DNA from: Octopus sinensis
Lineage: Eukaryota
DNA: 64,000 nucleotides
Assembly: GCF_006345805.1 (NCBI RefSeq)
Contig: NC_043026.1
Location: forward strand, 310,001 to 374,000
Reading direction: 5' to 3'
A program made the position numbers and the translations under genes. The notes beneath the pieces are model-generated. The model had not been told where the DNA came from. It worked only from the letters and a program-made list of their open reading frames with translations, and made no database searches. Positions 8,434 to 60,345 of the stretch are shown piece by piece. How positions within the stretch are numbered: the first letter of the stretch is position 1; the number at the start of each line of letters is the position of its first letter.

Positions 8434-8866
8434 GAAGATTCAATATCACTTATTGTTGTTCCATATGACTTTCGATTTTGTATCAGAATAACGAATTGAA
8501 GGGTAGTGATCTGTCTCTTCGTACTGACAGTCAAATGGTCCCTCATTGATGGTCAACCAGCCTCTGTCCCCTTCACAAAAACCATGTAATGTTATATAGA
8601 AGCGACGTACATGTCTAAGGAGAAAAAGAAAAAAAAAACTTGTTTGGGTTTCAGAATATGAAAATCTAAACATGTATTAAATAGACTAGTATGTCCGCTA
8701 CACGCAATTGAATTAGTCAGTGTTTAATTAAAAATAGCCATCTGTGTATCATACTAAATGTGTATACACACAAAGATGTGGGTTTAAACACTCACACACA
8801 TAAAAACACACATATGCACTGAAACACGCACACACACACACACACACACGTACGCGCACACACACA

Positions 8867-8904
<38 letters not shown>

Positions 8905-9154
8905 CTCACACAAACACGCAGAAATGCGCAAATGTCAATACACCAACAAAGGCGAAATTACACACGAGGCAAACACTTTGGTACAAAAATAAATAAATCC
9001 ACAAACGGCCACAAACATACGAGCGATAACATTTTCCTGTATTAAACATCTTATCAAAGCGCTAAATAAATATAAAATGAATTCTAGTCAAAATAAATAA
9101 TATAACGGAACATAAAAATATCTAAACCCAACGCATACAAATAAATATAATTAT

Positions 9155-9351
9155 GGTAAAGTGGCTGTGTGGTAAGTAGCTTGCTTACCAACAACATCCT
9201 TCCGGGTTCAGTCCTACTGCGTAGCACCTTGGGCAAGTGTTTTTACTCTAACCTCGGGCCGACAAAAGCCTTGTGAGTGGATTTGGTAGACGGAAACTGA
9301 AAGAAGCCCGTCGTATATATGTATATATATATATATGTGTGTGCGTGTGTG

Positions 9352-9425
<74 letters not shown>

Positions 9426-9582
9426 TCGCCCCAACATCTCTTGACAACCGTAACTTAGCGGTTCGGCAAAAGAGACCGATAGAATAAGTATTAGGCTTGC
9501 AAAAAATAAGTCCTGTGTCGATTTGCTCGACTAAAGGCAGTGCTCCAGCATGGCCACACTCAAATGACTGAAACAAGTAAAT
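9155..9582 (+). mobile_element. tRNA-derived SINE family 1 with internal (TA)/(TG)n (also 19700-20128 +, 30312-30738 +, ~3600-4069 -, 48097-48503 -, ~58892-59332 -)
   Basis: A-box-like GTGGCTGTGTGGTAAG and B-box-like GGGTTCAGTCC; resembles octopus SINEs from memory. Confidence 0.75.
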
Positions 9583-11029
9583 GAGCACATTAAGGTGAAA
9601 ATATATTTTCGTGTTTCCCACTTTGAAACATGCTTCTTGATGTGAAATCCAGGAAACTGAGCTGTTTGTCACGGGAAAACATTTAATTTAAAAGTGTGTT
9701 GTTAAAAATACGGAAATATATTAGCAATAGAGAAATAACCTTTTTCAGCGGCGGTGGAATTGCTAGGAGGAATTACAACCGTGTTTCGTAGTCTGCTACC
9801 ACAACACCTCCTATGTAGGATCCATTAGCTCAAGTCATCATCAGGAGGAACCACGTTCGGTTTCGGCCCCTACTCCTCTACCGTTTTGACGTGGCGGGAT
9901 CCCCCCGCCCTTTCGGGAATGTCTTCAGCTCTGGTGTTGTGTGCATGTCTTCTTTCTTCTGTTCCCGGGCCTCTTCGATGTATCGTCAGCGAGTGTCAGC
10001 CGGTGACTGATAGACTTGTCAAAACTCTCCCTTTAAATACCTACCGCGAGGCTCCAGCAGGGAGCAGCAGCAAGTTGTCACGTGACACTGTCTCACCTTA
10101 ACTGAGTACTGAAGGCGCGTAGTTTTAGCCCGCGTATTCTCTAAACGACCGTCACCTGTCAGTCAGCGAAGCTGATTCAGTGTCAGCTTGTCTCACCAAG
10201 TGATATTATATCCGGCCGGCATGTTATGACTTTCAAGACATTTTCGGTCTTCCCGCTGTACGTATTCCTGTTTCTTTCAAAACATCAATATGAAGTAGTC
10301 ATTGACATCCGCATGCGCAGACCTATTTAGCCTCGGTATAGAAAAACAGTGATTAACAAATCACTAGCGTTGCTGTTAGTCAAGAGGCAGAATATATTTC
10401 ATTATTACGGGCGGAAGCGGTATTAGTTCAAAATTGCATTCTGTATGTTATAATAAATGAAGATATAATGTTGAAAGCCTAGAGATGCGTTGTTCATCCC
10501 CAGAAAGTGTCGCGTCGAAATGTATAGTGTTAAAATTTATCTATAGCGTACGTAAAGTGACATTTTTTAACAATATAGGTCTCTACATAACAAAATAAAA
10601 GAAGATGAAATATATATTTGCATACCTAAATCCCTCAATTGAGAATTGAACTCCAGTGGCTGAAGCTAGGTCGTTCCACGGTGAATTTTTCAACTTTTCG
10701 TGAGAGAACCAGCTTTGAAGGTTTGTATTTCGTCCATCAAATATTATAGTTACCACATCTGTTTGGTTTTTATAAATCACCAGTTTCACCTGTAAAATAA
10801 ATGAGCATGTAGCACACACATACAACCACATACGCTTACAACCACACACGCACGCACATACACACATAATAAAAAGAAATGGCTCAAGTTAAATAGATCG
10901 AGGTAATTTAATATATATTTCCTTCACTGTTAGCTTAATGTCCACTCTCATTTTTACTTCGTAATTCTCCTGACCGAAATTAATCTGTTTAACATGCGAA
11001 ATTAATGACTTTGATTGGTCACTCGCTCC

Positions 11030-11530
11030 ATACGTATCTTTTTTTTCCTGCCTTTAACCCTCCATCGCTGAGTATAGGCCACTTAGAGTTGAATTCCATG
11101 TCGCATAATTTTTCACTTCTGTACTTATACTCTTCTATGAATGTCCCCCTTTCTCTAGTTCCTTCTGTTGATCTACGCCATGAGTTCTTAGGCCTACGAT
11201 ACTTTCTATATCCAGCCGGATTACACTGTAAAGCACTTTTCGCTATATTTGGTGTGTCTTTTATAATTGTGCTACGAATCCACTTCTACTTTTTCTTAAA
11301 TATTTGCTCCCTAATCGAAACTTGATTTGTTCTTTGCCATAGCTCCATATTGCTTATGTGTTCGGGTCATCTAATTTTAAGTATACTACGCAAGCATCTG
11401 TTGATGAATGATTGTATTTGCTGATTTGACGTATCTTCCTATTTCAAAATGAATCATATAATATAATTAATTACACTTTACTTAAAAGTCTCATATGCTA
11501 CCATGATACTATCTGGTATATATCACTTAA
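11030..11530 (-). mobile_element. RTE-type fragment, copy A (also ~21590-22080 -, ~32200-32690 -, ~56935-57425 +; truncated at ~301-515 and ~63762-63975 +)
   Basis: Near-identical to 46130-46630; duplicated with the repeat unit. Confidence 0.65.
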
Positions 11531-12756
11531 CCTTCAATACAGTATGACCTCAAGAACTGGAAGTGTTATGTAAACTTGTTATTTCATAGTATTACTTAAG
11601 ATCTCGTGTTATTGCTTGCCGAGTTGTATGACACAATGTATTAATAATTTTCTGCAATACCCAAATAATACGTTCGTTTTTAGCTCCATTACATGCAGAT
11701 ACACCCCATCCCACAAGCACATACACACACAAACAAACACACACACAAACTAATGAATATGCATACATATATACATGGTGGCTGCCCCCTTGTTATCGAG
11801 TATGGCCATTGCACGAAGCTTAATCAATGTTGTTATCTTGCAATGCCTGTGCAAGAAGATTTTTTATTAAGTGAGGAAGGGCTCTGCACTGAGTCAATCC
11901 CACTCACTAAGCAACAGCAGCCATAATCCGAAAAGAAGAACAAGTCCACATCATCGGTAACCACTGAGCCGCAGGTTTTATATCGGAGTTATCCCACTTA
12001 CCTGAGCTACCTTCTCCTAGAAGGATGCTTTAACAAAGACTAGAAGTCCTTCATTCCCAATGGTTTAACCGCGTGATCGGGTACTCAGTCCGATTATTTC
12101 TATGTCCCCGCGCATGATACATCCTTAATACATTTATTCGATGGCCATTGACTCTCAAGAGTTCCTCCGCCCTTTCACGGGTTTTGTTATTCATCCCGCA
12201 TGGTGTCCAATAAACACCCTCCTCACAAAGCAAGCTTGGTGGGGTTGCCGGTTTACTCGCCGACGGCCCGACTATGCAACAGGCTGTACTCGGTTACATG
12301 TTACCAGTAGCACTCGAAAGTGACCTGACATACATACATACATAAATACAAACGTACACACATGCATATATTCATACAAACGTAACACATGCATACACAC
12401 ACATATATGTATATATACATGCATACACATATATGGATACACACATACATACATGTATGCATATATACATACGTATGTGTATACACATGCACACTAACGC
12501 ACACACATGCGCACAAACAAACAGAAGGAACGCAGCCCTGATAACGGACAGGCTCAATGACTTTTGAAAGACGTAACGGAAATTTTAGAAAAAATAAGTA
12601 AATGAGTGGAAATCGAACCGGTGCGTGTGTTAACTAATAAGGCACTAAAACGAAAATGACTCTCCCCACATACAATAAACTGTGCTTTAACACACGAATT
12701 CACATAAAGAATAACCAAATACAAAAACCATATCTTTCTATCTATCTATCTACTTG

Positions 12757-12792
<36 letters not shown>

Positions 12793-12796
12793 CTTG

Positions 12797-12851
<55 letters not shown>

Positions 12852-12980
12852 GTCTGTCTATTTATCTATCTATCTATCTATCTATCTTTTTCAATCTCTC
12901 CAAGAAGGGAGAGTCTTTCGTTCAAGATAAATATTCTTATTACTGCGGTTTGCCGCAGATAAGATTCTTTACAACGGCGA

Positions 12981-13380
12981 GCTAGCAGAAACGTTAGCAC
13001 GCCGGGAGAAATGCTTAGCGGTATTTCGTCTGCGTTACGTTGTGAGTTCAAATTCCGCCGAGGTCCACTTTGCCTTTCATCCTTTCGGGGTCGATAAATT
13101 AAGTACCAATTACGCACTGGGGTCGATGTAATCGACTTAATACCTATGTCGGTCCTTGTTTGTCCTCTCGGTGTTTAGCCCCTTGTGGGTAATAAAGAAA
13201 TACGTATTTCGTCTGTGGTTACGTTCCGAGTTCAAATTTCGCCGAGGTCGACTTTGCCTTTCATCCTTTCGGGGTCAGTAAATTAAGTACCAGTTATGCA
13301 CCGGGGTCAACGTAATCGACTTAATCCGTTTGTCTGTCCTTGTTTGTCCCCTCTGTGTTTAGCCCCTTGTGGGTAGTAAA
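12981..13380 (+). mobile_element. SINE family 2, head-to-tail dimer in intron 2 (also 23474-23875, 34084-34482 +; 44733-45133, 55535-55935 -)
   Basis: GCTGGCAGAAACGTTAGC A-box, GAGTTCAAATTCC B-box, central GTCGACTTTGCCTTTCATCCTTTCGGGGTCGATAAA, tail AGCCCCTTGTGGGTAATAAAGAAAT. Confidence 0.78.
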
Positions 13381-13819
13381 TGGGAAAAAAAAGGAAAAAA
13401 AAATTCTTTACAACACTACTTCGTCAACCTAGTAAATAAATTCTAGAAATCAAATATATTACAAACATAATTGAATTGATCTAAAAGCCGGTTAATCATT
13501 ATAACGATTATGAAGACAATAATGTGTTGCGCACTCGCGCGTTTGTGCATGCATAAACATACATACCTCATCAATTGGAAGATTGTTCCAGAAATTTAGG
13601 AAAGGATGTCGGAAGAAGTTAGGACAAAAGGTACCATTGCATTTGTCCACATTCCAGGTTGAAGGAAGTCCTATATTCAGGAATGAATTATAGACTTTCG
13701 AACCAGCTCCCTTTGATATGGCATATACTTCGATCCATTTGCTATCTGAAATAATAATTATAACAACAATAGTAATAATAATGATGATAGAGGTATCAGC
13801 ACCTAGCTATCAACACGGT

Positions 13820-14008
13820 TAAAAAAGATTGGTGCACGTGTGAAGGTGGAACACCTTCAAAGAATAAGCATTGCTTGGAACTGTAAGAATTCTTTGCAGA
13901 GTTCTTGAAGCATGGCCAGTAAATAAGCGTCACCTTAGTCTGCTAAGCTGTGGACAGCTGACACGTTCCATCATAACCAGCAAAATAAGTTGTGAGATTT
14001 CATATAAT
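13820..14008 (+). mobile_element. Old R4/Dong-type LINE 3' remnant ending in the (AAC/AAT)n tract (also ~24325-24500 +, ~34920-35105 +, ~44110-44295 -, ~54910-55095 -)
   Basis: Encodes ...[13 protein letters not shown], similar to the C-terminus of the young element (VLMGTAHILRKIL), followed by a short UTR and an AAT tail. Confidence 0.6.
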
Positions 14009-14009
14009 A

Positions 14010-14014
14010 AGAAT

Positions 14015-14058
<44 letters not shown>

Positions 14059-14140
14059 AAACAACAACAAAAACAACAACAATAACAATAACAATAATAA
14101 TAATAATAATAATAATAAGTATAATAATGATAATAATAAT
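14010..14140. repeat. (AAC)n(AAT)n compound microsatellite in intron 1 (all copies)
   Basis: Read directly from the sequence. Confidence 0.95.
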
Positions 14141-15429
14141 AAATACCCTGATGCTGTACCTGACAGTAGCTCTCATGGCTTCTGATCTTAAGTGATTGGA
14201 AGTGTTATCTTACGAATAGCAAAGGACCACGTTTCGGACTTCTCCCACTACTGGGACGAAGACCGCTTCGCTCAACAAACAAACAAACAAACAGCAACAA
14301 CAATATTAATATTGATTTCAAATTTTGGCACAAGGCCAGCAAATTATTGGAGAGAAAAGTAAATCGATTTCATTGACCTCACTCTTCAACTGGTACCGCA
14401 AAAAGCAAAATAAAGGAACAAAACAAAACAGTAATAATAAAGAAGATTCACTTACTTCTATAGAAGGAAATCTCGTTCTTGTTATTCGTACTGACGACTG
14501 TCATTATATTTTTCGGTGAGTAATTCTTACAAGCATGGCTGACTTTGTTGTAAGTGAAAAATTGCGATTGGCTCCTCTGAGCGAGCGCGGTGCAGTCGAG
14601 TAGGTTTCGTGTTGAGGAGAATTGTTCTGTTGGAGGTGTCCCAATATAACCATAGGAATAACCAGTTCCCAAACGTTTGTAGTAGCCATCAAGTTCCTGA
14701 TCTGAGGTAACAACCAGAATTGTTGTAAGGGTTAACAGCAGCACTGCCATTGCAGCTGGACGAGTAAAAGCTGACTGGAACATTCTTGACTCTATGATTG
14801 CTAAACTTAGACAGAAGCGGGAAAGAAATGGCATGAAAAAGAGAAGGAATGAGGTGGGGTGAAATATGAAGAGATTCAGCAATGAGACAAAATGAATTTT
14901 AATAAAGAGAGAACGGGGAAGAGAAAGACAAGGAGAGAAGAAAAAAGTTAGAGAGTAACAGAGAGAAATCCTGAAAAAGAAGAGAGAGATACAATGAGAA
15001 GATGGAAAGTGTTTGTGTGTGAGAGGAAGGTTGTTCGGAAGAGAAAACGCAAAAGGAATAACATATAATTTAGAATAAAAAATTTAAAATATATTACGGT
15101 TATTGGTAAAGACGCAGGTCCTGGAGAAGATTTTAAGTTGTATTCGGGGAAGATTTTAAGTTGTATTACGGGGCCCTGGTTTGATATATCCAGGGTTTTC
15201 AAGAATTGGTAGTAATTCTAGGGCCTTCATTCATGACCATTAATAACTGGGACTATAGAATATAGGTTCAGGCACAGCTGTAAGATTAAGGAGCTCTCTT
15301 GGTAATCACATGCTTCCCGGTTCAATCCCACTGAGCGGCTACTTGTGCAAGTGTCTTCTAGTATTGGCCCGGCCAACCAATGCCTAGAGAGGGAATCTGG
15401 TAGCCGGAAAGTATGTGGAAGGCCTTTGC

Positions 15430-18736: not shown

Positions 18737-18792
18737 TTAGTTCTGCTGCCTCAGGCGGATGAATATGGCCATGGAGTCTGCTAATGCATAAC
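18737..18792 (-). CDS. Copy B exon 5
   Basis: 56 nt ending in TAA. Confidence 0.83.
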
Positions 18793-21700
18793 CTGCAAGT
18801 AACAAATAACAACATCAACAACAAAAAGACATTCAAATATATCGTGGGAGGGCTTTATACGTGGTCACTCGAATTACTAGAAATGGCAGCCGAATCTCTG
18901 CATCGTTTTGTAGGTCGGTCACTGATGGAACGCCTTTGAATATAAATCAGTTGAATCAAGGCTGATTGGCCGCTAAACAATAAGTACAAAATTAACATTT
19001 AGTACTACTACTCACAGTAAGACAAACGCACACACACACAGAAGATACAATATCACTTACCGTTGTTCCATATGACTTTCGATTTTGTATCAGAATAACG
19101 AAATATAGGGTAGTGATCTGACATTTCCCACTGACAGTAAAGTGGTCCCTCATTGATGGTCAACCAGCCTCTGTCCCCTTCACAAAAACCATGTATTGTT
19201 ATATGGAAGCGACGTGCAAGTCTAAGGAGAAAAAGAAAAAAAAAACTTGTTTGTGTTTCAGAATATGAAAATCTAAACATCTATTAAATAGACTAGTATG
19301 TCCGCTACACGCAATTGAATTAGTCAGTGCTTAATTAAAAAGAGCCACCTGTGTACCATACTAAATGTGTATACACACAAAGATGTGGGTTTAAACACTC
19401 ACACACATTAAAACACACATATGCACTGACACACGCACACACACACGTACGCACACAAACACGCAGAAATGCGCAAATGTCAATACACCAACAAAGGCGA
19501 AATTACACACGAGGCATACACTTTCGTACAAAAATAAATAAATCCACAAACGGCCACAAACATACGAGCGATAACATTTTCCTGTATTAAACATCTTATC
19601 AAAGCGCTAAATAAATATAAAACGAATTCTAGTCAAAAGAAATATTATAACGGAACATAAAAATATCTAAACACAACGCATACAAATAAATATAATTATG
19701 GTAAAGTGGCTGTGTGGTAAGTAGCTTGCTTACCAACCACATGCTTCCGGGTTCAGTCCTACTGCGTAGCACCTTGGGTAAGTGTCTTCTACTATAGCCT
19801 CGGGCCGACCAAAGCCTTGTGAGTGGATTTGGTAGACGGAAACTGAAAGAAGCCCGTCATATATATGTAAATATATATGTGTGTGCGTGTGTGTATATGT
19901 GTGTGTATGTGTATGTGCGTGTGTGTGTGTGTGTATGTGTGTGTTAGTGTGTGTGTGTGTGTGTGTGCTTGTCGCCCCAACATCCCTTCACAACCGTAAC
20001 TTAGCGGTTCGGCAAAAGACACCGATCGAATAAGTACTACGCTTACAATAAATAAGTCCTGTGGTCGATTTGCTCGACTAAAGGCAGTGCTCCAGCATGG
20101 CCACAGTCAAATGACTGAAACAAATAAATGAGCACATTAAGGTGAAAATATATTTTCGTGTTTCCCACTTTGAAACATGCTTCTTGATGTGAAATCCAGG
20201 AAACTGAGCTGTTTGTCACGGGAAAACATTTAATTTAAAAGTGTGTTGTTAAAAATACGGAAATATATTAGCAATAGAGAAATAACCTTTTCCAGCGGCG
20301 GTGGAATTGCTAGGAGGAATTACAACCGTGTTTCGTGGTCTGATACCACAACACCTCCTATGTAGGATCCATTAGCTCAAGACATCATCAGGAGGAACCA
20401 CGTCCGGTTTCGGCCCCTACTCCTCTACCGTTTTGACGTGGGGGGATGCCCCTAGCCCTTTCGGGGATGTCTTCAGCTCTGGTGTTGTGTGCATGTCTTC
20501 TTTCTTCTGTTCCCGGGCCTCTTCGATGTATCGTCAGCGCGTGTCAGACGGTGACCGACAGACTTGTCAAAATTCTCCCTTTAAATACCTGCCACGAGAC
20601 TCCAGCAGGCAGCCGCAGCAAGTTGTCACGTGACCCTGTCTCACCTTAACTGAGTAGTGAAGGCGCGTAGTTTTAGCCCGCGCATTCTCTAAAGGACCGT
20701 CACCTGTCAGTCAGCGAAGCTGATTCAGTGTCAGCTTGTCTCACCAAGTGATATTATATCCGGCCGGCATGTTATGACTTTCAATACATTTTCGGGCTTC
20801 CCGCTGTACGTATTCCTGTTTCTTTCAAAACTTCAATATGAAGTAGTCATTGACATCCGCATGCGCAGACCTATTTAGCCTCGGTATAGAAAAACAGTGA
20901 TTAACAAATCACCAGCGTTGCTGTTAGTCAAGAGGCAGAATATATTTCATTATTACGGACGGAAGCAGTATTAGTTCAAATTTGCATTCTGTATATTATA
21001 ATAAATGAGGATATAATGTTGAAAGCCTGGAGATGCGTTGTTCATCACCAGAAAGTGTCGCGTCAAAATGTATAGTGTTAAAATTTATCTATAGCGTACG
21101 TAAAGTGACATTTTTTAACAATATAGGTCTCTACATAACAAAATAAAAGAAGATGAAATATATATTTGCATACCTAAATCCCTCAATTGAGAATTGAACT
21201 CCAGTGGCTGAAGCTAGGTCGTTCAACGGTGAAGTTTTCAACTTTTCGTGAGAGAACCAGCTTTGAAGGTTTGTATTTCGTCCATCAAATATTATAGTTA
21301 CCACATCTGTTTTGTTTTTATAAATCACCACTTTCACCTGTAAAATAAATGAGCATGTAGCACACACATACAACCACATACGCTTACAACCACGCACGCA
21401 CATACACACATAATAAAAAGAAATGGTCAAGTTAAATAGATCGAGGTAATTCAATATGTATTTCCTTCACTGTTAGCTTAATGTCCACTCTCATTTTTAC
21501 TTCGTAATTCTCTTGACCGAAATTAATCTGTTTAACATGCGAAATTAATGACTTTGATTGGTCACTGGCTCCATACGTATGTTTTTTTTTCCTGCCTTTA
21601 ACCCTCCATCGCTGAGTATAGGCCACTTAGAGTTGAATTCCATGTCGCATAATTTTTCACTTCTGTACATATACTCTTCTATGAATGTCCCCCTTTCTCT

Positions 21701-23280: not shown

Positions 23281-23330
<50 letters not shown>

Positions 23331-24554: not shown

Positions 24555-24616
<62 letters not shown>

Positions 24617-25241: not shown

Positions 25242-25897
25242 TGCAGCTGGACGAGTAAAAGCTGACTGGAACATTCTTGACTCTATGATTGCTAAACTTA
25301 GACAGAAGCGGGAAAGAAATGGCATGAAAAAGAGAAGGAATGAGGTGGGGTGAAATATGAAGAGATTCAGCAATGAGACAAAATGAATTTTAATAAAGAG
25401 AGAACGGGGAAGAGAAAGACAAGGAGAGAAGAAAAAAGTTAGAGAGTAACAGAGAGAAATCCTGAAAAAGAAGAGAGAGATACAATGAGAAGATGGAAAG
25501 TGTTTGTGTGTGAGAGGAAGGTTGTTCGGAAGAGAAAACGCAAAAGGAATAACATATAATTTAGAATAAAAAATTTAAAATATATTACGGTTATTGGTAA
25601 AGACGCAGGTCCTGGGGAAGATTTTAAGTTGTATTACGGGGCCCTGGTTTGAGATATCCAGGGTTTTCAAGAATTGGTAGTAATTCTAGGGCCTTCATTC
25701 ATGACCATTAATAACTGGGACTATAGAATATAGGTTCAGGCACAGCTGTAAGATTAAGGAGCTCTCTTGGTAATCACATGCTTCCCGGTTCAATCCCACT
25801 GAGCGGCTACTTGTGCAAGTGTCTTCTAGTATTGGCCCGGCCAACCAATGCCTAGAGAGGGAATCTGGTAGCCGGAAAGTATGTGGAAGGCCTTTGC

Positions 25898-33889: not shown

Positions 33890-33939
<50 letters not shown>

Positions 33940-42197: not shown

Positions 42198-42243
<46 letters not shown>

Positions 42244-44003: not shown

Positions 44004-44044
<41 letters not shown>

Positions 44045-44068
44045 ATTATAATTATTATTATTGTTGTT

Positions 44069-44101
<33 letters not shown>

Positions 44102-47100
44102 ATTATTATATGAAATCTCACAACTTATTTTGCTGGTTATGATGGAACGTGTCAGCTGTCCACAGCTTAGCAGACTAAGGTGACGCTTATTTACTGGCCA
44201 TGCTTCAAGAACTCTGCAAAGAATTCTTACAGTTCCAAGCAATGCTTATTCTTTGAAGGTGTTCCACCTTCACACGTGCACCAATCTTTTTTAACCGTGT
44301 TGATAGCTAGGTGCCGATACCTCTATCATCATTATTATTAATATTGTTGTTATAATTATTATTTCAGATAGCAAATGGATCAAAGTATATGCCATATCAA
44401 AGGGAGCTGGTTCGAAAGTCTATAATTCATTCCTGAATATAGGACTTCCTTCAACCTGGAATGTGGACAAATGCAATGGTACCTTTTGTCCTAACTTCTT
44501 CCGACATCCTTTCCTAAATTTCTGGAACAATCTTCCAATTGATGAGGTATGTATGTTTATGCATGCACAAACGCGCGAGTGCGCAACACATCATTGTCTT
44601 CATAATCGTTATAATGATTAACCGGCTTTTAGATCAATTCAATTATGTTTGGAATATATTTGATTTCTAGAATTTATTTATTAGGTTGACGAAGTAGTGT
44701 TGTAAAGAATTTTTTTTTCCTTTTTTTTCCCATTTACTACCCACAAGGGGCTAAACACAGGGGGGACAAACAGGGACAGACAAACGGATTAAGTCGATTA
44801 CGTTGACCCCGGTGCATAACTGGTACTTAATTTACTGACCCCGAAAGGATGAAAGGCAAAGTCGACCTCGGCGAAATTTGAACTCGGAACGTAACCACAG
44901 ACGAAATACGTATTTCTTTATTACCCACAAGGGGCTAAACACCGAGAGGACAAACAAGGACCGACATAGGTATTAAGTCGATTACATCGACCCCAGTGCG
45001 TAACTGGTACTTAATTTATCGACCCCGAAAGGATGAAAGGCAAAGTCGACCTCGGCGGAATTTGAACTCACAACGTAACGCAGACGAAATACCGCTAAGC
45101 ATTTCTCCCGGCGTGCTAACGTTTCTGCCAGCTCGCCGTTGTAAAGAATCTTATCTGCGGCAAACCGCAGTAATAAGAATATTTATCATGAACGAAAGAC
45201 TCTCCCTTGTTGGAGAGATTGAAAAAGATAGATAGATAGATAGACAGATAGATGCATGTGTTACGTTTGTATGAATATATGCATGTGTGTACGTTTGTAT
45301 GTATGTATGTATGTATGTATGTATGTATGTCAGGTCACTTTCGAGTGCTACTGGTAACATGTAACCCATTACAACCTGTTGCATTGTCGGGCCGTCGGCG
45401 ACTAAACCGGCAACCCCACCAAGCTTGCTTTGTGAGGAGGGTGTTTATTGGACACCCTGCGGGATGAAAAACAAAACCCGCGAAAGGGCGGAGGAACTCT
45501 TGAGAGTCAATGGCCATTGAATAAATGTATTAAGGATGTATCATGCGCGGGGACATAGAAATAATCGGACTGAGTACCCGATCACGCGGTTAAACCATTG
45601 GGAATGAAGGACTTCTAGCCTTTGTTAAAGCATCCTTCTAGGAGAAGGTAGCTCAGGTAACTGGGATAACTCCGATGTAAAACTGCTGCTCAGTGGTTAC
45701 CGATGATGTTGACTTGTTCTTCTTTTCGGATTATGGCTGCTATTGCTTAGTGAGTGGGTTGACTCAGTGCAGAGCCCTTCCTTACTTAATAAAAAATCTT
45801 CTTGCACAGGCATTGCACGATAACAACATTGATTAAGCTTCGTGCAATGGCCATACTCGATGACAAGGGGGCAGCCACCATGTATATATGTATGCATATT
45901 CTTGTGTTTGTGTGTGTGTTTGTTTGTGTGTGTGTTTGTGTGTGTATGTGCTTGTGGGATGGGGTGTATCTGCATGTAAAGGAGATAAAAACGAATGTAT
46001 TATTTGGGTATTGCGATACTTGTCTTAACAGCAGATAATTATTAATACATTGTGTCATACAACTCGGCAAGCAATAACACGAGATCTTAAGTAATACTAT
46101 GAAATAACAAGTTTACATAACACTTCCAGTTCTTGAGGTCATACTGTATTGAAGGTTAAGTGATATATACCAGATAGTATCATGGTAGCATATGAGTGAA
46201 GTGTAATTAATTATATTATATGATTCATTTTGAAATAGGAAGATACGTCAAATCAGCAAATACAATCATTCATCAACAGATGCTTGCGTAGTATACTTAA
46301 AATTATATGACCCGAACACATAAGCAATATGGAGCTATGGCAAAGAACAAATCAAGTTTCGATTAGGGAGTAAATATTTAAGAAAAAGTAGAAGTGGATT
46401 CGTAGCACAATTATAAAAGACACACCAAATATAGCGAAAAGTGCTTTACAGTGTAATCCGGCTGGATATAGAAAGTATGGTAGGCCTAAGAACTCATGGC
46501 GTAGATCAACAGAAGGAACTAGAGAAAGGGGGACATTCATAGAAGAGTATAAGTACGGAAGTGAAAAATTATGCGACATGGAATTCAACTCTAAGTAGCC
46601 TATACTCAGCGATGGAGGGTTAAAGGCAGGAAAAAAAAACATACGTATGGAGCGAGTGACCAATCAAAGTCATTAAATACGCATGTTAAACAGATTAATT
46701 TCGGTCAAGAGAATTACGAAGTAAAAATGAGAGTGGACATTAAGCTAACAGTGAAGGAAATACATATTGAATTACCTCGATCTATTTAACTTGATCCATT
46801 TCTTTTTATTATGTGTGTATGTGCGTGCGTGTGTGGTTGTAAGCGTATGTGGTTGTATGTGTGTGCTACATGCTCATTTATTTTACAGGTGAAACTGGTG
46901 ATTTATAAAAACAAAACAGATGTGGTAACTATAATATTTGATGGACGAAATACAAACCTTCAAAGCTGGTTCTCTCACGAAAAGTTGAAAAATTCACCGT
47001 GGAACGACCTAGCTTCAGCCACTGGAGTTCAATTCTCAATTGAGGGATTTAGGTATGCAAATATATATTTCATCTTCTTTTATTTTGTTATGTAGAGACC

Positions 47101-49468
47101 TATATTGTTAAAAAATGTCACTTTACGTACGCTATAGATAAATTTTAACACTATACATTTTGACGCGACACTTTCTGGTGATGAACAACGCATCTCCAGG
47201 CTTTCAACATTATATCTTCATTTATTATAATATACAGAATGCAAATTTGAACTAATACTGCTTCCGTCTGTAATAATGAAATATATTCTGCCTCTTGACT
47301 AACAGCAACGCTAGTGATTTGTTAATCACTGTTTTTCTATACCGAGGCTAAATAGGTCTGCGCATGCGGATGTCAATGACTACTTCATATTGAAGTTTTG
47401 AAAGAAACAGGAATACGTACAGCGGGAAGACCGAAAATGTCTTGAAAGTCATAACATGCCGGCCGGATATAATATCACTAGGTGAGACGAGCTGACACTG
47501 AATCAGCTTGGCTGACTGACAGGTGACGGTCGTTTAGAGAATGCGCGGGCTAAAACTACGCGCTTTCACTACTCAGTTAAGGTGAGACAGGGTCACGTGA
47601 CAACTTGCTGCGGCTGCCTGCTGGAGTCTCGTGACAGGTATTTAAAGAGAGAATTTTGACAAGTCTGTCAGTCACCGGCTGACACGCGCTGACGATACAT
47701 CGAAGAGGCCCGGGAACAGAAGAAAGAAGACATGCACACAACATCAGAGCTGAAGACATCCCCGAGAGGGCGGGAGCATCCCGCCACGTCAAAACGGTAG
47801 AGGAGTAGGGGCCGAAACCGGACGTGGTTCCTCCTGATGATGTCTTGAGCTAATGGATCCTACATAGGAGGTGTTGTGGTATCAGACCACGAAACACGGT
47901 TGTAATTCCTCCTAGCAATTCCACCGCCGCTGGAAAAGGTTATTTCTCTATTGCTAATATATTTCCGTATTTTTAACAACACACTTTTAAATTAAATGTT
48001 TTCCCGTGACAAACAGCTCAGTTTCATAGATTTCACATCAAGAAGCATGTTTCAAAGTGGGAAACACGAAAATATATTTTCACCTTAATGTGCTCATTTA
48101 TTTGTTTCAGTCATTTGACTGTGGCCATGCTGGAGCACTGCCTTTAGTCGAGCAAATCGACCACAGGACTTATTTATTGTAAGCGTAGTACTTATTCGAT
48201 CGGTGTCTTTTGCCGAACCGCTAAGTTACGGTTGTGAAGGGATATTGGGGCGACAAGCACACACACACACACACACACTAACACACACATACACACACAC
48301 ACACATATACACACACGCACACACATATATATTTACATATATATGACGGGCTTCTTTCAGTTTCCGTCTACCAGATCCACTTACAAGGCTTTGGTCGGCC
48401 CGAGGCTATAGTAGAAGACACTTGCCCAAGGTGCTACGCAGTAGGACTGAACCCGGAAGCATGTGGTTGGTAAGCAAGCTACTTACCACACAGCCACTTT
48501 ACCATAATTATATTTACTTGTAAGTGTTGGGTTTAGATATTTTTATGTTCCGTTATAATATTTATTTTGACTAGAATTCATTTTATATTTATTTAGCGCT
48601 TTGATAAGATGTTTAATACAGGAAAATGTTATCGCTCGTATGTTTGTGGCCGTTTGTGGATTTATTTATTTTTGTACCAAAGTGTATGCCTCGTGTGTAA
48701 TTTCGCCTTTTTTGGTGTATTGACATTTTCGCATTTCCGCGTGTTTGTGTGAGCATGTGTGTGTGTGTATGTGTGTGTGTGTGTGTGTATGTGTGTGCGT
48801 ACGTGTGTGTGTGCGTGTTTCAGTGCATATGTGTGTTTTTATGTGTGTGAGTGTTTAAACGCACATCTTTGTGTGTATACACATTTAGTATGGTACACAG
48901 GTGGCTCTTTTTAATTAAGCACTGACTAATTCAATTGCGTGTAGCGGACATACTAGTCTATTTAATACATGTTTAGATTTTCATATTCTGAGACCCAAAC
49001 AAGTTTTTTTTTCTTTTTCTCCTTAGACTTGCACGTCGCTTCCATATAACAATACATGGTTTTTGTGAAAGAGACAGAGGATGGCTGACCATCAATGAGG
49101 GACCATATGTATGTGAGTTCGATAAGTCAGATCACTACCCTACAATTCGTTATTCTGATACAAAATCGAAAGTCATATGGAACAACGGTAAGTGATATTG
49201 TATCTTCTGTGTGTGTTTGCGTGTGTCTTACTGTGAGTAGTAGTACTAAAAATTAATTTTGTACTTATTGTTTAGCGGCCAAAAGTGACCGACCCACAAA
49301 ACGATGCAGAGATTCGGCTGCCATTTCTAGTAATTCGAGTTGCCATCTATAAAGACCTCCCAAGAAATATTTGAAATCCTTTTGTTATTGATGTTGTTAT
49401 TGTTACTTGCAGGTTATGCATTAGCAGACTCCATGGCCATATTCATCCGCCTGAGGCAGCAGAACTAA
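41569..49468 (+). CDS. Gene copy D (intact): 5-exon secreted protein, 284 aa; exons 41569-41863, 44368-44546, 46889-47052, 49027-49187, 49413-49468
   Basis: All introns GT-AG with compatible phases (1,0,2,1); spliced CDS is 855 nt and open. Translation: [284 protein letters not shown]. Hydrophobic N-terminus looks like a signal peptide; AATAAA at 49568 and 49714. Confidence 0.88.
42271..44000 (-). mobile_element. 5'-truncated R4/Dong-type LINE (end of RT + restriction-like endonuclease) in intron 1 of copy D
   Basis: ORFs 43952-43203 and 43165-42485, split by a frameshift near 43220: late RT motifs (FGPDKCAK, YKYLG), degenerate CCHC finger (RVC..ETIDHVVSKC), RHD and RPDI..D motifs. Inserted into an (AAT)n tract; absent from the other copies. 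Confidence 0.88.
44368..44546 (+). CDS. Copy D exon 2
   Basis: ttcag|ATAGC...GATGAG|gtatgt, 179 nt, open. Confidence 0.85.
46130..46630 (+). mobile_element. Degraded RTE-type LINE 3' fragment in intron 2 of copy D
   Basis: Degenerate ORF2 C-terminal motifs across frames: [12 protein letters not shown], ISNxELWQRT, [25 protein letters not shown]. Confidence 0.7.
46889..47052 (+). CDS. Copy D exon 3
   Basis: ttttacag|GTGAAA...TTTAG|gtatgc, 164 nt. Confidence 0.87.
47592..47673 (+). promoter_or_regulatory. Putative Pol II core promoter in intron 3 (GTCACGTGAC E-box, TATTTAAA, TCAGTC Inr)
   Basis: TATTTAAA at 47639 lies 31 nt upstream of the A of TCAGTC (47670); TGCGCATGCG at 47359. Motif geometry only. 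Confidence 0.3.
49027..49187 (+). CDS. Copy D exon 4 (hypervariable exon)
   Basis: ccttag|ACTTGC...AACG|gtaagt, 161 nt. Confidence 0.87.
49413..49468 (+). CDS. Copy D exon 5 (terminal)
   Basis: ttgcag|GTTATG...AACTAA. Confidence 0.83.
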
Positions 49469-52995: not shown

Positions 52996-54170
52996 CAGGC
53001 AAAGGGCTTCCACATACTTTCCGGTTACCAGATTCCCTCTCTAGGCATTGGTTGGCCGGGCCAATACTAGAAGACACTTGCCCAAGTAGCCGCTCAGTGG
53101 GATTGAACCGGGAAGCATGTGATTACCAAACGATCTCCTTAATCTTACAGCTCTGCCTTCGCCTATATTCTGTGGTCCCTGTTATTAATGGTCATGAATA
53201 AAGGCCCTAGAATTACTACCAACTGGAAAAGCTTCGTCTGGTCTGAACAGATCTATGCTCAGTTGCCATTATCACTTGTAGGTTGTTCCTATGCTGTTGA
53301 GTTTTTAGGTTCTTTCTCTTCGCTGTGTTGTCCGGTTTTACCCCTCTAGTACAGAGAGTTCGATTTAACCCAAGCCTGGTCGGTGTGGCATGGAGGACAG
53401 GTTGTTACCCAAGCCGTGTGTCCCTGCTCTCTGCATCATGGATGGATCCAAAAGAACAACAAGGAACGTTGCAATTTCCTATCAGCGTCCTCGTAGGAGT
53501 TGCAAGAGTGAAGTATTGAACTGATTCAGGGTGTTTGATGCCCGCTTTTACCTCAGTGTTTACACCCAAACACTTTCCCGTGGTTTAGTAATATTGCAAG
53601 GTAACGGAGGATTGAAATCAGATTTTTCTTTCCCCTATGATAGGTAGCCCCACTACCACCACCAACACTAGGCTAATGAGCCCCATCTGATCAACTGAAT
53701 TATTAATTAACTCAGATTTGGGAACCTGCCGAGTACGTCTACTCCGGATAAAACTAACCTGGGAACAACATTGGCTAAGAAGTGTTTCTAAACTCTTGAA
53801 AACCCTGGAAATCTCAAACCAGGGCCCCGTAACGAATACAACTTATTCTAAATTATATGTTATTCCTTTTGCGTTTTCTCTTCCGAACAACCTTCCTCTC
53901 ACACACAAACACTTTCCATCTTCTCATTGTATCTCTCTCTTCTTTTTCAGGATTTCTCTCTGTTACTCTCTAACTTTTTTCTTCTTTCCTTGTCTTTCTC
54001 TTCCCCGTTCTCTCTTTATTAAAATTCATTTTGTGTCATTGCAGAATCTCTTCATATTTCACCCCACCTCATTCTTTCTCTCTTTCATGCCATTTCTTTC
54101 CCGCTTCTGTCTAATTTTAGCAATCATAGAGTCAAGAATGTTCCAGTCAGCTTTTACTTGTCCAGCTGCA

Positions 54171-54801
54171 ATGGCAGTGCTGCTGTTAACCCTTACAACA
54201 ATTCTGGTTGTTACCACAGATCAGGAACTTGATGGCTACTACAAACGTTTGGGACCTGGTTATTCCTATGGTTATATTGGGACACCTCCAACAGAACAAT
54301 TCTTCTCAACACGAAACCTACTCGACTGCACCGCGCTCGCTCAGAGGAGCCAATCGCAATTTTTCACTTACAACAAAGTCAGCCATGCTTGTAAGAATTA
54401 CTCACCGAAAAATATAATGACAGTCGTCAGCACGGATAACAAGAACGAGATTTCCTTCTTTAGAAGTAAGTGAATCTTCTTTATTATTACTGTTTTTCTT
54501 TTGTTTTTTGATTTTGCTTTTTGCGGTACCAGTTGAAGAGTGAGATCAATGAAATCGAGTTACTTATCTCTCCAATAATTTGCTGGCCTTGTGCCAAAAT
54601 TTGAAATCAATATTAATATTCTTGTTGCTGTTTGTTTGTTTGTTTGTTGAGCGAAGCGGTCTTCGTCCCAGTAGTGGGAGAAGTCCGAAACGTGGTCCTT
54701 TGCTATTCGTAAGATAACACTTCCAATCACTTAAGATCAGAAGCCATGAGAGCCACTGTCAGGTACTGCATCAGGGTATTTATTATTATTATCATTTTTA
54801 A

Positions 54802-54856
<55 letters not shown>

Positions 54857-56108
54857 ATTATAATTATTATTATTGTTGTTATTGTTGTTGTTGTTGTTGT
54901 TATTCTTATTATATGAAATCTCACAACTTATTTTGCTGGTTATGATGGAACGTGTCAGCTGTCCACAGCTTAGCAGACTAAGGTGACGCTTATTTACTGG
55001 CCATGCTTCAAGAACTCTGCAAAGAATTCTTACAGTTCCAAGCAATGCTTATTATTTGAAGGTGTTCCACCTTCACACGTGCACCAATCTTTTTTAACCG
55101 TGCTGATAGCTAGGTGCCGATACCTCTATCATCATTATTATTACTATTGTTGTTATAATTATTATTTCAGATAGCAAATGGATCAAAGTATATGCCATAT
55201 CAAAGGGAGCTGGTTCGAAAGTCTATAATTCATTCCTGAATATAGGACTTCCTTCAACCTGGAATGTGGACTAATGCAATGGTACCTTTTGTCCTAACTT
55301 CTTCCGACATCCTTTCCTAAATTTCTGGAACAATCTTCCAATTGATGAGGTATGTATGTTTATGCATGCACAAACGCGCGAGTGCGCAACACATCATTGT
55401 CTTCATAATCGTTATAATGATTAACCGGCTTTTAGATCAATTCAATTATGTTTGGAATATATTTGATTTCTAGAATTTATTTATTAGGTTGACGAAGTAG
55501 TGTTGTAAAGAATATTTTTTTCCTTTTTTTTCCCATTTACTACCCACAAGGGGCTAAACACAGGGGGGACAAACAAGGACAGACAAACGGATTAAGTCGA
55601 TTACGTTGACCCCGGTGCATAACTGGTACTTAATTTACTGACCCCGAAAGGATGAAAGGCAAAGTCGACCTCGGCGAAATTTGAACTCGGAACGTAACCA
55701 CAGACGAAATACGTATTTCTTTATTACCCACAAGGGGCTAAACACCGAGAGGACAAACAAGGAACGACATAGGTATTAAGTCGATTACATCGACCCCAGT
55801 GCGTAACTGGTACTTAATTTATCGACCCCGAAAGGATGAAAGGCAAAGACGACCTCGGCGGAATTTGAACTCACAACGTAACGCAGACGAAATACCGCTA
55901 AGCATTTCTCCCGGCGTGCTAACGTTTCTGCCAGCTCGCCGTTGTAAAGAATCTTATCTGCGGCAAACCGCAGTAATAAGAATATTTATCATGAACGAAA
56001 GACTCTCCCTTGTTGGAGAGATTGAAAAAGATAGATAGATAGATAGATAGACAGATAGATAGATAGATAGATAGACAGATAGATAGATAGATAAATAGAC
56101 AGACAGAC

Positions 56109-56178
<70 letters not shown>

Positions 56179-59100
56179 GTAGATATGGTTTTAGTATTTT
56201 GTTATTCTTTATGTGAATTCGTGTGTTAAAGCACAGTTTATTGTATCTGGGGAGAGTCATTCTCTTTTTAGTGCCTTATTAGTTAACACACGCACCGGTT
56301 CGATTTCCACTCCTTTACTTATTTTTTCTAAAATTTTCGTTACGTCTTTCAAAAGTCATTGAGCCTGTCCGTTATCAGGGCTGCGTTCCTTCTGCTTGTT
56401 TGTGCGCATGTGCGTGCGTTAGTGTGCATGTGTATACATATACGTATGTATATCTGCATACATGTATGTATGTGTGTATGCATATATGTGTATGCATATA
56501 TATATACATATATGTGTGTGTATGCATGTGTGTACGTTTGTATTTATGTATGTATGTATGTATGTATGTATGTATGTATGTATGTCAGGTCACTTTCGAG
56601 TGCTACTGGTAACATGTAACCCATTACAACCTGTTGCATAGTCGGGCCGTCTGCGACTAAACCGGCAACCCCACCAAGCTTGCTTTGTGAGGAGGGTGTT
56701 TATTGGACACCCTGCCGCATGAAAAACAAAACCCGTGAAAGGGCGGAGGAACTCTTGAGAGTCAATGGTCATCCAATAACTGTATTAAGGATGTATCATG
56801 CGTGGGGACATAGAAATAATCGGACTGAATACCCGATCACGCGGTTAAAACATTGGGAGTGAAGGACTTCTAGCCCTTGTTAGGGCATCCTTCTAGGAGA
56901 AGGTAGCTCAGGTAACTGGGATAACTCCGATGTCATACTGTATTGAAGGTTAAGTGATATATACCAGATAGTATCATGGTAGCATATGAGTGAAGTGTAA
57001 TTAATTATATTATATGATTCATTTAGAGATAGCAAGATACGCCAAATCAGCAAATACAATCATTCATCAACAGATGCTTGCGTAGTATACTTAAAATTAT
57101 ATGACCCGAACACATAAGCAATATGGAGCTATGGCAAAGAACAAATCAAGTTTCGATTAGGGAGTAAATATTTAAGAAAAAGTAGAAGTGGATTCGTAGC
57201 ACAATTATAAAAGACACACCAAATATAGCGAAAAGTGCTTTACAGTGTAATCCGGCTGGATATAGAAAGTATGGTAGTCCTAAGAACTCATGGCGTAGAT
57301 CAACAGAAGGAACTAGAGAAAGGGGGACATTCATAGAAGAGTATAAGTACAGAAGTGAAAAATTATGCGACATGGAATTCAACTCTAAGTGGCCTATACT
57401 CCGCGTTGGAGGGTTAAAGGCAGGAAAAAAAAACATACGTATGGAGCGAGTGACCAATCAAAGTCATTAAATACGCATGTTAAACAGATTAATTTCGGTC
57501 AAGAGAATTACGAAGTAAAAATGAGAGTGGACATTAAGCTAACAGTGAAGGAAATACATATTTATTTACCTCGATCTATTTAACTTGATCCATTTCTTTT
57601 TATTATGTGTGTATGTGCGTGCGTGTGTGGTTGTAAGCGTATGTGGTTGTATGTGTGTGCTACATGCTCATTTATTTTACAGGTGAAACTGGTGATTTAT
57701 AAAAACAAAACAGATGTGGTAACTATAATATTTGATGGACGAAATACAAACCTTCAAAGCTGGTTCTCTCACGAAAAGTTGAAAAATTCACCGTGGAACG
57801 ACCTAGCTTCAGCCACTGGAGTTCAATTCTCAATTGAGGGATTTAGGTATGCAAATATATATTTCATCTTCTTTTATTTTGTTATGTAGAGACCTATATT
57901 GTTAAAAAATGTCACTTTACGTACGCTATAGATAAATTTTAACACTATACATTTTGACGCGACACTTTCTGGTGATGAACAACGCATCTCCAGGCTTTCA
58001 ACATTATATCTTCATTTATTATAATATACAGAATGCAAATTTGAACTAATACTGCTTCCGTCTGTAATAATGAAATATATTCTGCCTCTTGACTAACAGC
58101 AACGCTAGTGATTTGTTAATCACTGTTTTTCTATACCGAGGCTAAATAGGTCTGCGCATGCGGATGTCAATGACTACTTCATATTGAAGTTTTGAAAGAA
58201 ACAGGAATACGTACAGCGGGAAGACCGAAAATGTCTTGAAAGTCATAACATGCCGGCCGGATATAATATCACTAGGTGAGACGAGCTGACACTGAATCAG
58301 CTTGGCTGACTGACAGGTGACGGTCGTTTAGAGAATGCGCGGGCTAAAACTACGCGCTTTCACTACTCAGTTAAGGTGAGACAGTGTCATGTGACAACTT
58401 GCTGCGGCTGCCTGCTGGAGTCTCGTGGCAGGTATTTAAAGGGAGAATTTTGACAAGTCTGTCGGTCACCGGCTGACACGCGCTGACGATAAATCGAAGA
58501 GGCCCGGGAACAGAAGAAAGAAGACATGCACACAACACCAGAGCTGAAAACATCCCCGAAAGGGCTAGGGGCATCCCCCCACGTCAAAACGGTAGAGGAG
58601 TAGGGGCCGAAACCGGACGTGGTTCCTCCTGATGATGTCTTGAGCTAATGGATCCTACATAGGAGGTGTTGTGGTATCAGACCAAGAAACACGGTTGTAA
58701 TTCCTCCTAGCAATTCCACCGCCGCTGGAAAAGGTTATTTCTCTATTGCTAATATATTTCCGTATTTTTAACAACACACTTTTAAATTAAATGTTTTCCC
58801 GTGACAAACAGCTCAGTTTCCTGGATTTCACATCAAGAAGCATGTTTCAAAGTGGGAAACACGAAAATATATTTTCACCTTAATGTGCTCATTTACTTGT
58901 TTCAGTCATTTGACTGTGGCCATGCTGGAGCACTGCCTTTAGTCGAGCAAATCGACCCCAGGGCTTATTTTTTGTAAGCGTAGTACTAATTCGATCGGTG
59001 TCTTTTGCCGAACCGCTAGGTTACCGTTGTCAAGGCATGTTGGGGCGACAAACACAGACACACACAGACAGACAGACAGACACACACACACACACACACA

Positions 59101-60345
59101 AATACACACACACAAATATTCTCATACACACACATACATACACACACGCACACACACATATATACATATATACGACGGGCTTTTTTCAGTTTCCCTCTAC
59201 GAAATCCACTCACAAGGCTTTGGTCGGCCCGAGGCTATAGTAGAAGACACTTGCCCAAGGTGCTACACAGTAGGACTGAACCCGGAAGGATGTTGTTGGT
59301 AAGCAAGCTAATTACCACACAGCCACTTTACCATAATTATATATATTTGTATGTGTTGGGTTTAGATATTTTTATGTTCCGTTATATTATTTCTTTTGAC
59401 TAGAATTCATTTTATATTTATTTAGCGCTTTGATAAGGTGTTTAATACAGGAAAATGTTATCACTCGTATATTTGTGGCCGTTTGTGGATTTATTTATTT
59501 TTGTACCAAAGTGTATGCCTCGTCTGTAATTTCGCCTTTGTTGGTGTATTGACATTTGCGCATTTCTGCGTGTTTGTGTGAGCATGTGTGTGTGTATGTG
59601 TGTGTATGTGTGTGTGTGTGCGTACGTGTGTGTGTGTGCGTGTTTCAGTGCATATGTGTGTTTTTATGTGTGTGAGTGTTTAAACGCACATCTTTGTGTG
59701 TATACACATTTAGTATGATACACAGATGGCTATTTTTAATTAAGCACTGACTAATTCAATTGCGTATAGCGGACATACTAGTCTATTTAATACATGTTTA
59801 GATTTTCATATTCTGAAACCCAAACAAGTTTTTTTTTCTTTTTCTCCTTAGACATGTACGTCGCTTCTATATAACATTACATGGTTTTTGTGAAGGGGAC
59901 AGAGGCTGGTTGACCATCAATGAGGGACCACTTCACTGTCAGTTCGAAGAGTCAGATCACTACCCTTCAATTCGTTATTCTGATACAAAATCGAAAGTCA
60001 TATGGAACAACGGTAAGTGATATTGTATATTCTGCGTGTGTGTGTGTGTGTGTGTGTGCGTGTGTGTGTGTGTGTGTGCGTGTGTCTTACTGTGAGTAGT
60101 AGTACTAAAAGTAAATTTTGTACTTATTGTTTAGCTGCCAATCAGGCTTGATTGAGCTGATTTATGAATAAAAGGATTCTGACCGAGAATCGACTGCTAT
60201 TTCTAGTAATTCGAGTGACCACGTATAAAGCCCTCCCACGATATATTTGAATGTCTTTTGTTGTTGATGTTGTTATTTGTTACTTGCAGGTTATGCATTA
60301 GCAGACTCCATGGCCATATTCATCCGCCTGAGGCAGCAGAACTAA
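54171..60345 (+). pseudogene. Gene copy E: exons 54171-54465, 55171-55349, 57683-57846, 59852-60012, 60290-60345; premature stop in exon 2
   Basis: In-frame TAA at 55272-55274, the same lesion as copy C; splice sites otherwise intact. Confidence 0.82.

Follow-up and report, generated by a model that had tools for sequence, protein, structure and literature searches.

A 64,000-nucleotide stretch of octopus DNA, which we call the window and within which all coordinates are counted, holds a cluster of genes that appear to be young paralogs from a large octopus family, and one short loop of the protein that they encode varies far more than its immediate surroundings. The copies carry lesions, are mosaic in structure, share loop types with other octopus genomes and differ in exon 4 with an excess of non-synonymous changes. 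The explanation that we favour, and consider quite probable, is a birth-and-death family in which gene conversion shuffles 3' cassettes and selection favours diversity in this one loop of a secreted protein. An earlier description of the window from its letters alone (the sequence-only reading) had pointed to the fourth exon of these genes as hypervariable, with almost purely non-synonymous change, and had spoken of alleles; the copies are instead tandem and inverted paralogs in units of about 10.6 kb, as is evident when the window is compared with itself.

A search of the window for the motif DHYP located six copies of exon 4, three on the minus strand (A, B and C) and three on the plus strand (an orphan cassette, D and E; Table 1). 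All six lie where the sequence-only reading had placed them and all six peptides match, and both its four loop types and the dimorphism that it described at the start of the exon (HVRRFYITL or LARRFHITI) were confirmed. It had called the copies otherwise near-identical, which is true of exons 1-3 and 5 (98-100% identity, compared with 90-92.5% between the types in exon 4) and not of intron 4, which has three deep haplotypes. Eleven close copies of exon 4 were compared, six of them lying in the window, two in O. sinensis and three in O. vulgaris, and the set was then extended by one and by two more distant O. sinensis copies. Among the eleven, variation falls into two blocks, codons 1-17 and codons 27-41. 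The second block, referred to here as the patch, comprises 15 codons around the second conserved Cys. Codons 18-26 between the blocks contain just two silent differences (Gly18 and Leu20), both confined to the D/orphan lineage, and codons 42-53 and exon 5 are nearly fixed. Nucleotide diversity among nine full copies follows the same outline: 4.0% in intron 3, 11.1% in exon-4 codons 1-12, 4.2% in codons 13-26, 15.1% in the patch, 1.65% in codons 42-53, 6.4-8.9% in intron 4, 0.8% in exon 5 and 5.6% downstream. Segregating sites make up 35.6% of the patch and 11.5% of intron 3 (Fisher P=8e-5). Copy A and the O. sinensis copy sY, probable orthologs which both have A as the split last base of exon 4, where most copies have G, differ by 3 replacements in the patch and by nothing in the other 38 full exon-4 codons, and their flanking introns differ by about 1.8%. 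The pattern also extends beyond the young cluster: variability in 27 Octopus paralogs peaks in the patch loop and in two loops next to it, the part encoded by exons 2-3 is strongly conserved, and the positions around the Cys that vary here also do so in other subfamilies.

Loop types are shared between genomes. The patch of B is that of the O. vulgaris copy v1, the patch common to D and the orphan is one residue away from that of the O. sinensis orphan, and the exon-4 protein of E is identical to that of O. sinensis LOC118768578; judged by these sequence matches, the loop types predate the genomes compared. Within exon 4 and its intron the variation is reshuffled, as all four combinations were found both for the exon-start dimorphism against the patch sites and for patch type against intron-4 haplotype.

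Counts of substitutions reproduce the hand counts of the sequence-only reading. By the Nei-Gojobori method A and B differ in exon 4 by 14 non-synonymous and 0 synonymous changes, and over the whole coding sequence by 24 and 2 (the hand count was about 23 and 2). Almost purely non-synonymous change thus holds for this pair, whereas comparisons that involve the D type contain 3.5 synonymous beside 12.5 non-synonymous changes. Minimum events were also counted per codon on minimum spanning trees, a procedure that is independent of any single phylogeny. The patch requires 19.5 non-synonymous and 0.5 synonymous events in 11 copies, or 23.5 and 0.5 in 12 copies, and omega, the ratio of non-synonymous to synonymous rates, comes to about 8-10 in the patch, 0.7-0.9 in the 5' part and 0.3-0.5 in the framework. 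A Goldman-Yang codon model (F3x4 codon frequencies, neighbour-joining tree, all branch lengths optimised) was fitted to the close copies, a small data set, and exon 4 was split into two partitions because recombination is evident. For the whole exon, model M0 gives an omega of 2.3 (P=0.04 against omega=1), and M2a is preferred to M1a with 2ΔlnL=20.0 (P=5e-5). Codons 1-26 with their own tree have an M0 omega of 1.09, which is not significant, and P=0.29 for M2a against M1a; codons 27-53, again with their own tree, have an M0 omega of 6.5 (P=0.016), with 2ΔlnL=18.4 (P=1e-4) and ω2≈15 for the class with omega above 1, which is made up of patch codons 27, 28, 31, 33 and 39 and of codon 50 just outside the patch. 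Diversifying selection, which the sequence-only reading had proposed, therefore finds support in the patch and not at the start of the exon, and a clustered class of codons with omega above 1 is present, subject to the caveats of a self-written model, a neighbour-joining tree and recombination in the data.

The points that follow, along with some on the history of the cassette and the state of the copies that are taken up below, weigh against our explanation. The codon model, being our own, is unbenchmarked against PAML or HyPhy. For the patch, the binomial P runs from 0.009 to 0.11 according to how the half event is rounded, and synonymous sites are few (about 8). When one more distant copy is added, synonymous changes enter and the patch omega drops to 1.5, which is not significant. 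Recombination within a partition and multi-nucleotide changes both inflate tests of the M2a type, and several codons differ at 2-3 bases. Finally, the sequence-only reading had named equal divergence of the flanking introns as a sign of an old conversion tract rather than selection, and this is partly what is found on the 3' side, where the segregating sites of patch and intron 4 do not differ significantly (P=0.13), and not on the 5' side, where intron 3 is clearly less variable. The evidence for selection on the patch is only suggestive, because recombination inflates these tests.

The 3' end of the gene has a history of its own, and with it comes an explanation that needs no positive selection: an unconstrained loop with an omega near 1, sitting in old cassettes whose flanks have been homogenised by conversion, would look fast by comparison. 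We regard this as unlikely, though deserving of serious weight. The cassette formed by exon 4, intron 4 and exon 5 is 90.7% identical to that of a different subfamily, no less than the cassettes of the window are to one another, while the 5' parts of that subfamily are only 78-86% identical to the window genes, and 5' gene bodies of the cluster differ by only 1.4-3.5%, within the window and between genomes alike. As the cassette is as close to another subfamily as to its own, part of the contrast that the sequence-only reading saw comes from old cassettes that gene conversion has moved onto recently homogenised or duplicated bodies, and the cassette, to go by these identities, has its own, older genealogy. 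Intron 4 fits this picture. Its diversity is elevated, at half that of the patch, and its three deep haplotypes, which are told apart by an indel of 24 nt and some 15 substitutions clustered in about 90 nt, occur independently of exon-4 type (examples are at 18793-19060, 29417-29672 and 49188-49412; a (TG)n array of very variable length begins about 25 nt past the exon-4 donor). Copies B and C have the same exon 4 and different versions of intron 4, and the orphan, with the exon 4 of D, is B-like in intron 4. The D-type comparisons, in which pS is about equal to pN at roughly 0.10 across the exon, speak for the same alternative, as do the loss of significance with a more distant copy and the absence of a significant signal at the exon start. 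Old neutral lineages should, however, differ silently too, and the patch has accumulated 0.5 synonymous against 23.5 non-synonymous events. The quiet framework codons 13-26 and 42-53 adjoin the patch directly, so that conversion breakpoints would have been needed repeatedly within a few bases of a 45-nt island. Even where two copies have a common intron-4 haplotype, their patches are 5-9 times more divergent than that intron; B and the O. sinensis orphan, for instance, differ at 13 of 45 patch positions and at 6 of 209 intron-4 positions. Cassette age alone leaves three features unexplained, namely the near-absence of silent change in the patch, the sharp framework boundaries and the 5-9-fold excess.

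The state of the copies raises a further alternative, in which constraint has been relaxed in a dying pseudogene cluster and the differences are simply decay. The window has five full-length copies, four of them defective, and this cluster in particular may be decaying, both of which count against our explanation. In copy A the exon-4 donor is dead (AACAACA/ataagt in place of the normal AACAACG/gtaagt), and unspliced read-through terminates at NNNK*. Copy B has an open frame and canonical splice sites, and a TGG to TTG change (Trp to Leu) at 21224-21226 has removed a near-invariant Trp that is conserved in at least 90% of the family. Copy C has lost its start codon (ATG to ATT), has a TAA at 34742-34744 in exon 2 and a 1-nt deletion near 34729, and copy E has a TAA at 55272-55274, also in exon 2, which leaves D as the sole fully intact gene. 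The O. sinensis copies sX and sY are broken as well, and most of the few differences that lie outside exon 4 are non-synonymous (8, beside 0 synonymous, between B and D). Even so, decay in this form seems to us very improbable. It should be spread evenly, whereas the changes concentrate in 15 codons, and the 12 codons that follow hardly vary, nor does exon 5. Copies C and E, although broken, have loop types identical to those of open copies, C to B and v1 and E to LOC118768578, and the O. vulgaris copies v2 and v3 are intact, with further loop types. More generally, pure relaxation or pseudogene decay is an unlikely source of the pattern, because the changes are clustered and exon 4 contains no stop or frameshift in any of the 11 close copies from the window and its O. 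sinensis and O. vulgaris sister loci.

The course of events that we propose on these grounds, with selection acting on the loop, would be as follows. In the cluster, copies would arise by tandem and inverted duplication and often turn into pseudogenes, and gene conversion would copy short tracts from one paralog to another. Such conversion would hold exons 1-3 and most introns 96-99% alike, and would also transfer cassettes of exon 4, intron 4 and exon 5 among gene bodies. A 15-codon loop between two beta-strands would meanwhile gather and retain replacements at about 5-10 positions, while the framework codons on either side would not change, even silently. Selection would thus favour, or at least preserve, amino-acid diversity in the loop.

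Gene models were derived from homologous octopus proteins together with tblastn and blastn mapping. The gene has five exons with canonical splice sites and encodes 295 amino acids. An ending at ...NNGK* is read-through into the intron: exon 4 is not terminal, ends AAC AAC G/gtaagt and is spliced to an 18-codon exon 5 about 260-430 nt downstream. The protein consists of a signal peptide, a putative degenerate PAN/Apple-like module encoded by exon 1, and a beta-rich C-terminal domain of about 185 amino acids encoded by exons 2-5; with its signal peptide and without a membrane anchor, it is probably secreted. Pfam searches with single exons and with the full window protein returned nothing significant, and the window protein has no PAN hit in Pfam even at E<=10. 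PAN_3 was matched by 3 of 18 Octopus paralogs (best E 0.005) and PAN_1 by 2 of 18 (best E 0.065), and in the wider family PAN_1 is found in 14 of 36 members, with a best E of 1e-9. One O. bimaculoides paralog is labelled 'Apple domain-containing' in UniProt. Foldseek gives local matches of the N-terminal 60 or so residues to apple domains (SML-2, AMA1 and the HGF N-domain) with probabilities of 0.95-0.99 but E>=0.06, the PAN-like region has only 2 invariant Cys, and its pLDDT in the full-length AlphaFold model is only about 53-57. That model is poor overall (pLDDT 61) and has no Foldseek match at E<0.001.

The C-terminal domain alone is modelled better (pLDDT 83, pTM 0.82). In this model the patch forms a single loop (pLDDT 86-91) between strands 149-155 and 171-174, flanked by the invariant Cys145 and Cys161 (C-x15-C), and the loop is probably clamped by a disulfide between these two; by predicted secondary structure, the variable residues would cluster at the surface. 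The framework reads Cys...GW...Cys, then Pro and Tyr past the loop, then a C-terminal AD-x-MAIFI strand, with the last strand supplied by exon 5. Five residues are invariant in 39 sequences including Haliotis, namely C145, W151, C161, P170 and Y174 (P0035 numbering), and all five are present in all six window copies. The sequence-only reading had counted Cys, GW, GP and DHYP as invariant; this is correct within the young subfamily, whereas across the family GP and DHYP vary and only the two Cys, the Trp of GW, one Pro and one Tyr are fixed.

The family is not restricted to this locus; it occurs elsewhere in octopus and in other phyla. At least 48 annotated Octopus products across three species belong to it, mostly on one chromosome. 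The closest annotated product is O. sinensis LOC118768581 (98% identity over the aligned 74% of the query, exons 1-3), and the window proteins are 78-81% identical over their full length to LOC118768578 and LOC118768579 of the same species. These two gene models (P0010, about 243 kb, and P0009, about 101 kb, respectively) enclose other family members and are probably chimeric, joining exons of different paralogs; in O. vulgaris, models P0012 and P0027 run on into intron 3. A family profile built from 18 octopus members (alignments A1/A3) finds matches in 1014 cluster representatives, and 603 of these reach E<=1e-10. The domain is found in amphioxus, crinoids, a sea star, a hemichordate, bivalves, gastropods, Argonauta, a flatworm and one Myxococcota record. 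In this last protein (MCK6544734.1, P0087) the otherwise metazoan domain lies at residues 1617-1729, in the company of TIG repeats and a partial fibrinogen-C match.

The domain was without a Pfam model when the octopus paralogs and wider relatives were scanned, and a PDB sequence search with the family profile gave only a marginal apple-domain match (E=1.6). DUF7922 was considered and set aside, being a weak match in one amphioxus relative that the other members do not have; nothing was found on it in the literature, nor was any paper on the octopus family or its domain. The top 50 Foldseek matches of the domain model in the PDB are nearly all fibrinogen-related, with a best E of 0.03, TM scores of 0.30-0.41 and an rmsd of 7-10 Å. 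Membership of the fibrinogen-related domains (FReD) was nevertheless rejected: no member scanned has a Fibrinogen_C match, and a profile-profile comparison (hhalign) of the family with a FReD alignment that had been validated against the PDB gave a probability of 0.06%.

In other phyla the domain, which is often repeated, is joined to ZP, Sushi, TSP1, F5/8C, SUEL-lectin, PAN, WSC, D8C and TIG modules, and because of these extracellular partners it is considered an extracellular module itself. Taken together with the pattern of variation, such company makes the loop a probable ligand-contact surface on which selection favours diversity, and by analogy the most likely role would be immune or lectin-like recognition, pattern recognition or adhesion binding by a secreted protein. 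Selection could also be real and the role a different one, with the proteins acting as secreted binders in saliva or venom, in reproduction (gamete or mate recognition) or in chemosensation. We hold this to be possible but doubtful. The layout, in which the signal and 5' exons are conserved, a 3' exon is hypervariable and the Cys framework is fixed, resembles that of venom-peptide and reproductive families, and a signal peptide without a membrane anchor and a lineage-specific expansion suit it too; against it, there is no Pfam or PDB match to a known cephalopod toxin family or reproductive protein, and the proteins that carry the domain in other phyla are large, multidomain and of matrix or adhesion type.

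We further speculate, as a long shot, that the orphan cassette and the pseudogenes could serve as a donor library, from which germline or somatic short-tract conversion into a few expressed genes would diversify a secreted receptor; the logic would be analogous to that of pseudo-V gene conversion in the chicken. The orphan and the inversion junction beside it are kept in two genomes, and the orphan exon 4 is open in both; exon 5 of the orphan was translated for the window copy alone. The intact copy D has exactly the loop of the orphan with a different intron 4.

The window has a G+C content of 39.6% and is rich in (TG)n and (TA)n microsatellites. Between 7000 and 61000 the cluster is quasi-palindromic, with three tandem units on the minus strand followed by an inverted block on the plus strand, and C and the orphan stand head to head at an inversion junction (about 36290-36539) that is also present in O. 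sinensis (L001, 2368-5499). Homology of the orphan cassette begins about 85 nt 5' of its exon 4, adjoining this junction. That the copies are alleles duplicated by the assembly is rejected, as the units differ in insertions and lesions and the C/orphan junction recurs in O. sinensis. Copies C and E, on opposite arms of the palindrome, have an identical AAA to TAA nonsense codon in exon 2, which suggests either that the lesion was spread by gene conversion or that an already-dead copy was duplicated. Only copy D has a 1.74-kb insertion in intron 1 (about 42270-44007), which is T-rich (AT skew -0.28) and flanked by a (TTA)n array on either side (42200-42270 and 44007-44049). Copy number of the cluster varies between octopus genomes, and the sister loci in O. 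sinensis (L001, L004) and O. vulgaris (L002, L003), which are 94-97% identical to the window with none identical, likewise hold a mix of intact and broken copies.

Table 1. Gene copies in the window, with their exons and the exon-4 patch (codons 27-41)
Copy	Strand	Span	Exon 1	Exon 2	Exon 3	Exon 4	Exon 5	Patch	Patch sequence	State
A	-	8113..14783	14456-14783	13567-13745	10626-10789	8454-8614	8113-8168	8491-8535	FDCQYEETDHYPSIR (FDCQYEET..SI)	exon-4 donor dead
B	-	18737..25274	24947-25274	24062-24240	21174-21337	19061-19221	18737-18792	19098-19142	identical to C	open frame, Trp to Leu
C	-	29361..35889	35562-35889	34668-34845	31784-31947	29673-29833	29361-29416	29710-29754	identical to B	pseudogene
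Orphan 3' cassette	+	36539..37102				36624-36784	37047-37102	36703-36747	YVCEFDKSDHYPTIR, same as D (YVCEFDKS..TI)	without exons 1-3
D	+	41536..49468	41536-41863	44368-44546	46889-47052	49027-49187	49413-49468	49106-49150	YVCEFDKSDHYPTIR	sole fully intact gene (295 aa)
E	+	54138..60345	54138-54465	55171-55349	57683-57846	59852-60012	60290-60345	59931-59975	LHCQFEESDHYPSIR (LHCQFEES..SI)	pseudogene
Truncated seventh copy	+	303..4126			772-931 (relic)					in-frame stop in exon 3 (QS*FSH); part of intron 3 at 3170-4126

The truncated seventh copy is broken by an open reading frame at 2202-2744 on the plus strand, whose 180-residue product has a CCHC zinc-knuckle motif, CYKCGQRGHIRANC, and a Glu/Lys-rich tail; to judge by these features it looks like a retroelement gag fragment inserted in the gene copy. 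A second small open reading frame, of 88 amino acids (11022-11285, minus strand), lies in intron 2 of copy A and has counterparts at the corresponding position of the other units. Being conserved in every unit, it is older than the duplications, and it may resemble the C-terminal region of non-LTR retrotransposon open reading frames.

The diversified immune lectins that are well studied in other molluscs are not known from cephalopods, and how cephalopods recognise microbes or other variable ligands is poorly understood. The present family is large and unannotated in octopus, and its domain is unnamed in the databases yet widespread in marine invertebrates. Five codons of one short loop are under apparent positive selection, which makes this loop a likely determinant of specificity. 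If binding does differ by loop type, the domain would be a new fold among invertebrate recognition molecules and would open a first functional route to more than 1000 protein clusters that are so far uncharacterised; if it does not, the cluster would still illustrate cleanly, for a cephalopod genome, how gene conversion moves cassettes and how a family evolves by birth and death.

The evolutionary pattern itself is of a known kind; the novelty lies in the example, an octopus family with an unnamed domain. As an analogy of pattern, drawn from established knowledge, a close parallel is the peptide-binding region of class I and II molecules of the major histocompatibility complex (MHC). There, too, short patches of codons with dN>dS lie within a conserved fold, motif types are common to several species, short-tract gene conversion produces a patchwork, diversity in the adjacent intron is raised, and pseudogenes stand among functional genes in a birth-and-death cluster. 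Fold and phylum are unrelated to those of the vertebrate MHC, and the octopus variants are paralogs in one haplotype. The fibrinogen-related FREPs, which include those of the mollusc Biomphalaria, the ficolins and tachylectin-5 resemble the octopus genes in being secreted invertebrate multigene families with diversity concentrated in one exon, and fibrinogen-related proteins also have a Cys...GW...Cys element beside a loop and supply the weak Foldseek matches; the octopus proteins differ from these families in having a PAN/Apple-like N-terminal partner, not an IgSF or collagen one, and in having no Fibrinogen_C match. To PAN/Apple adhesins and lectins (PF00024; Sarcocystis SML-2, Toxoplasma MIC4, the HGF N-domain) they are linked by the local Foldseek matches of the N-terminal 60 or so residues to apple domains, but in octopus the hypervariable part lies outside the PAN-like module. 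The same architecture, length and Cys/Trp/Pro/Tyr framework are found in proteins of about 297 amino acids that combine PAN with this domain in Mytilus edulis (XP_071164198), Potamilus (KAK3587740) and Haliotis (LOC124270091). These are only 22-30% identical to the octopus proteins, and an expansion and loop hypervariability of the octopus type are undescribed for them.

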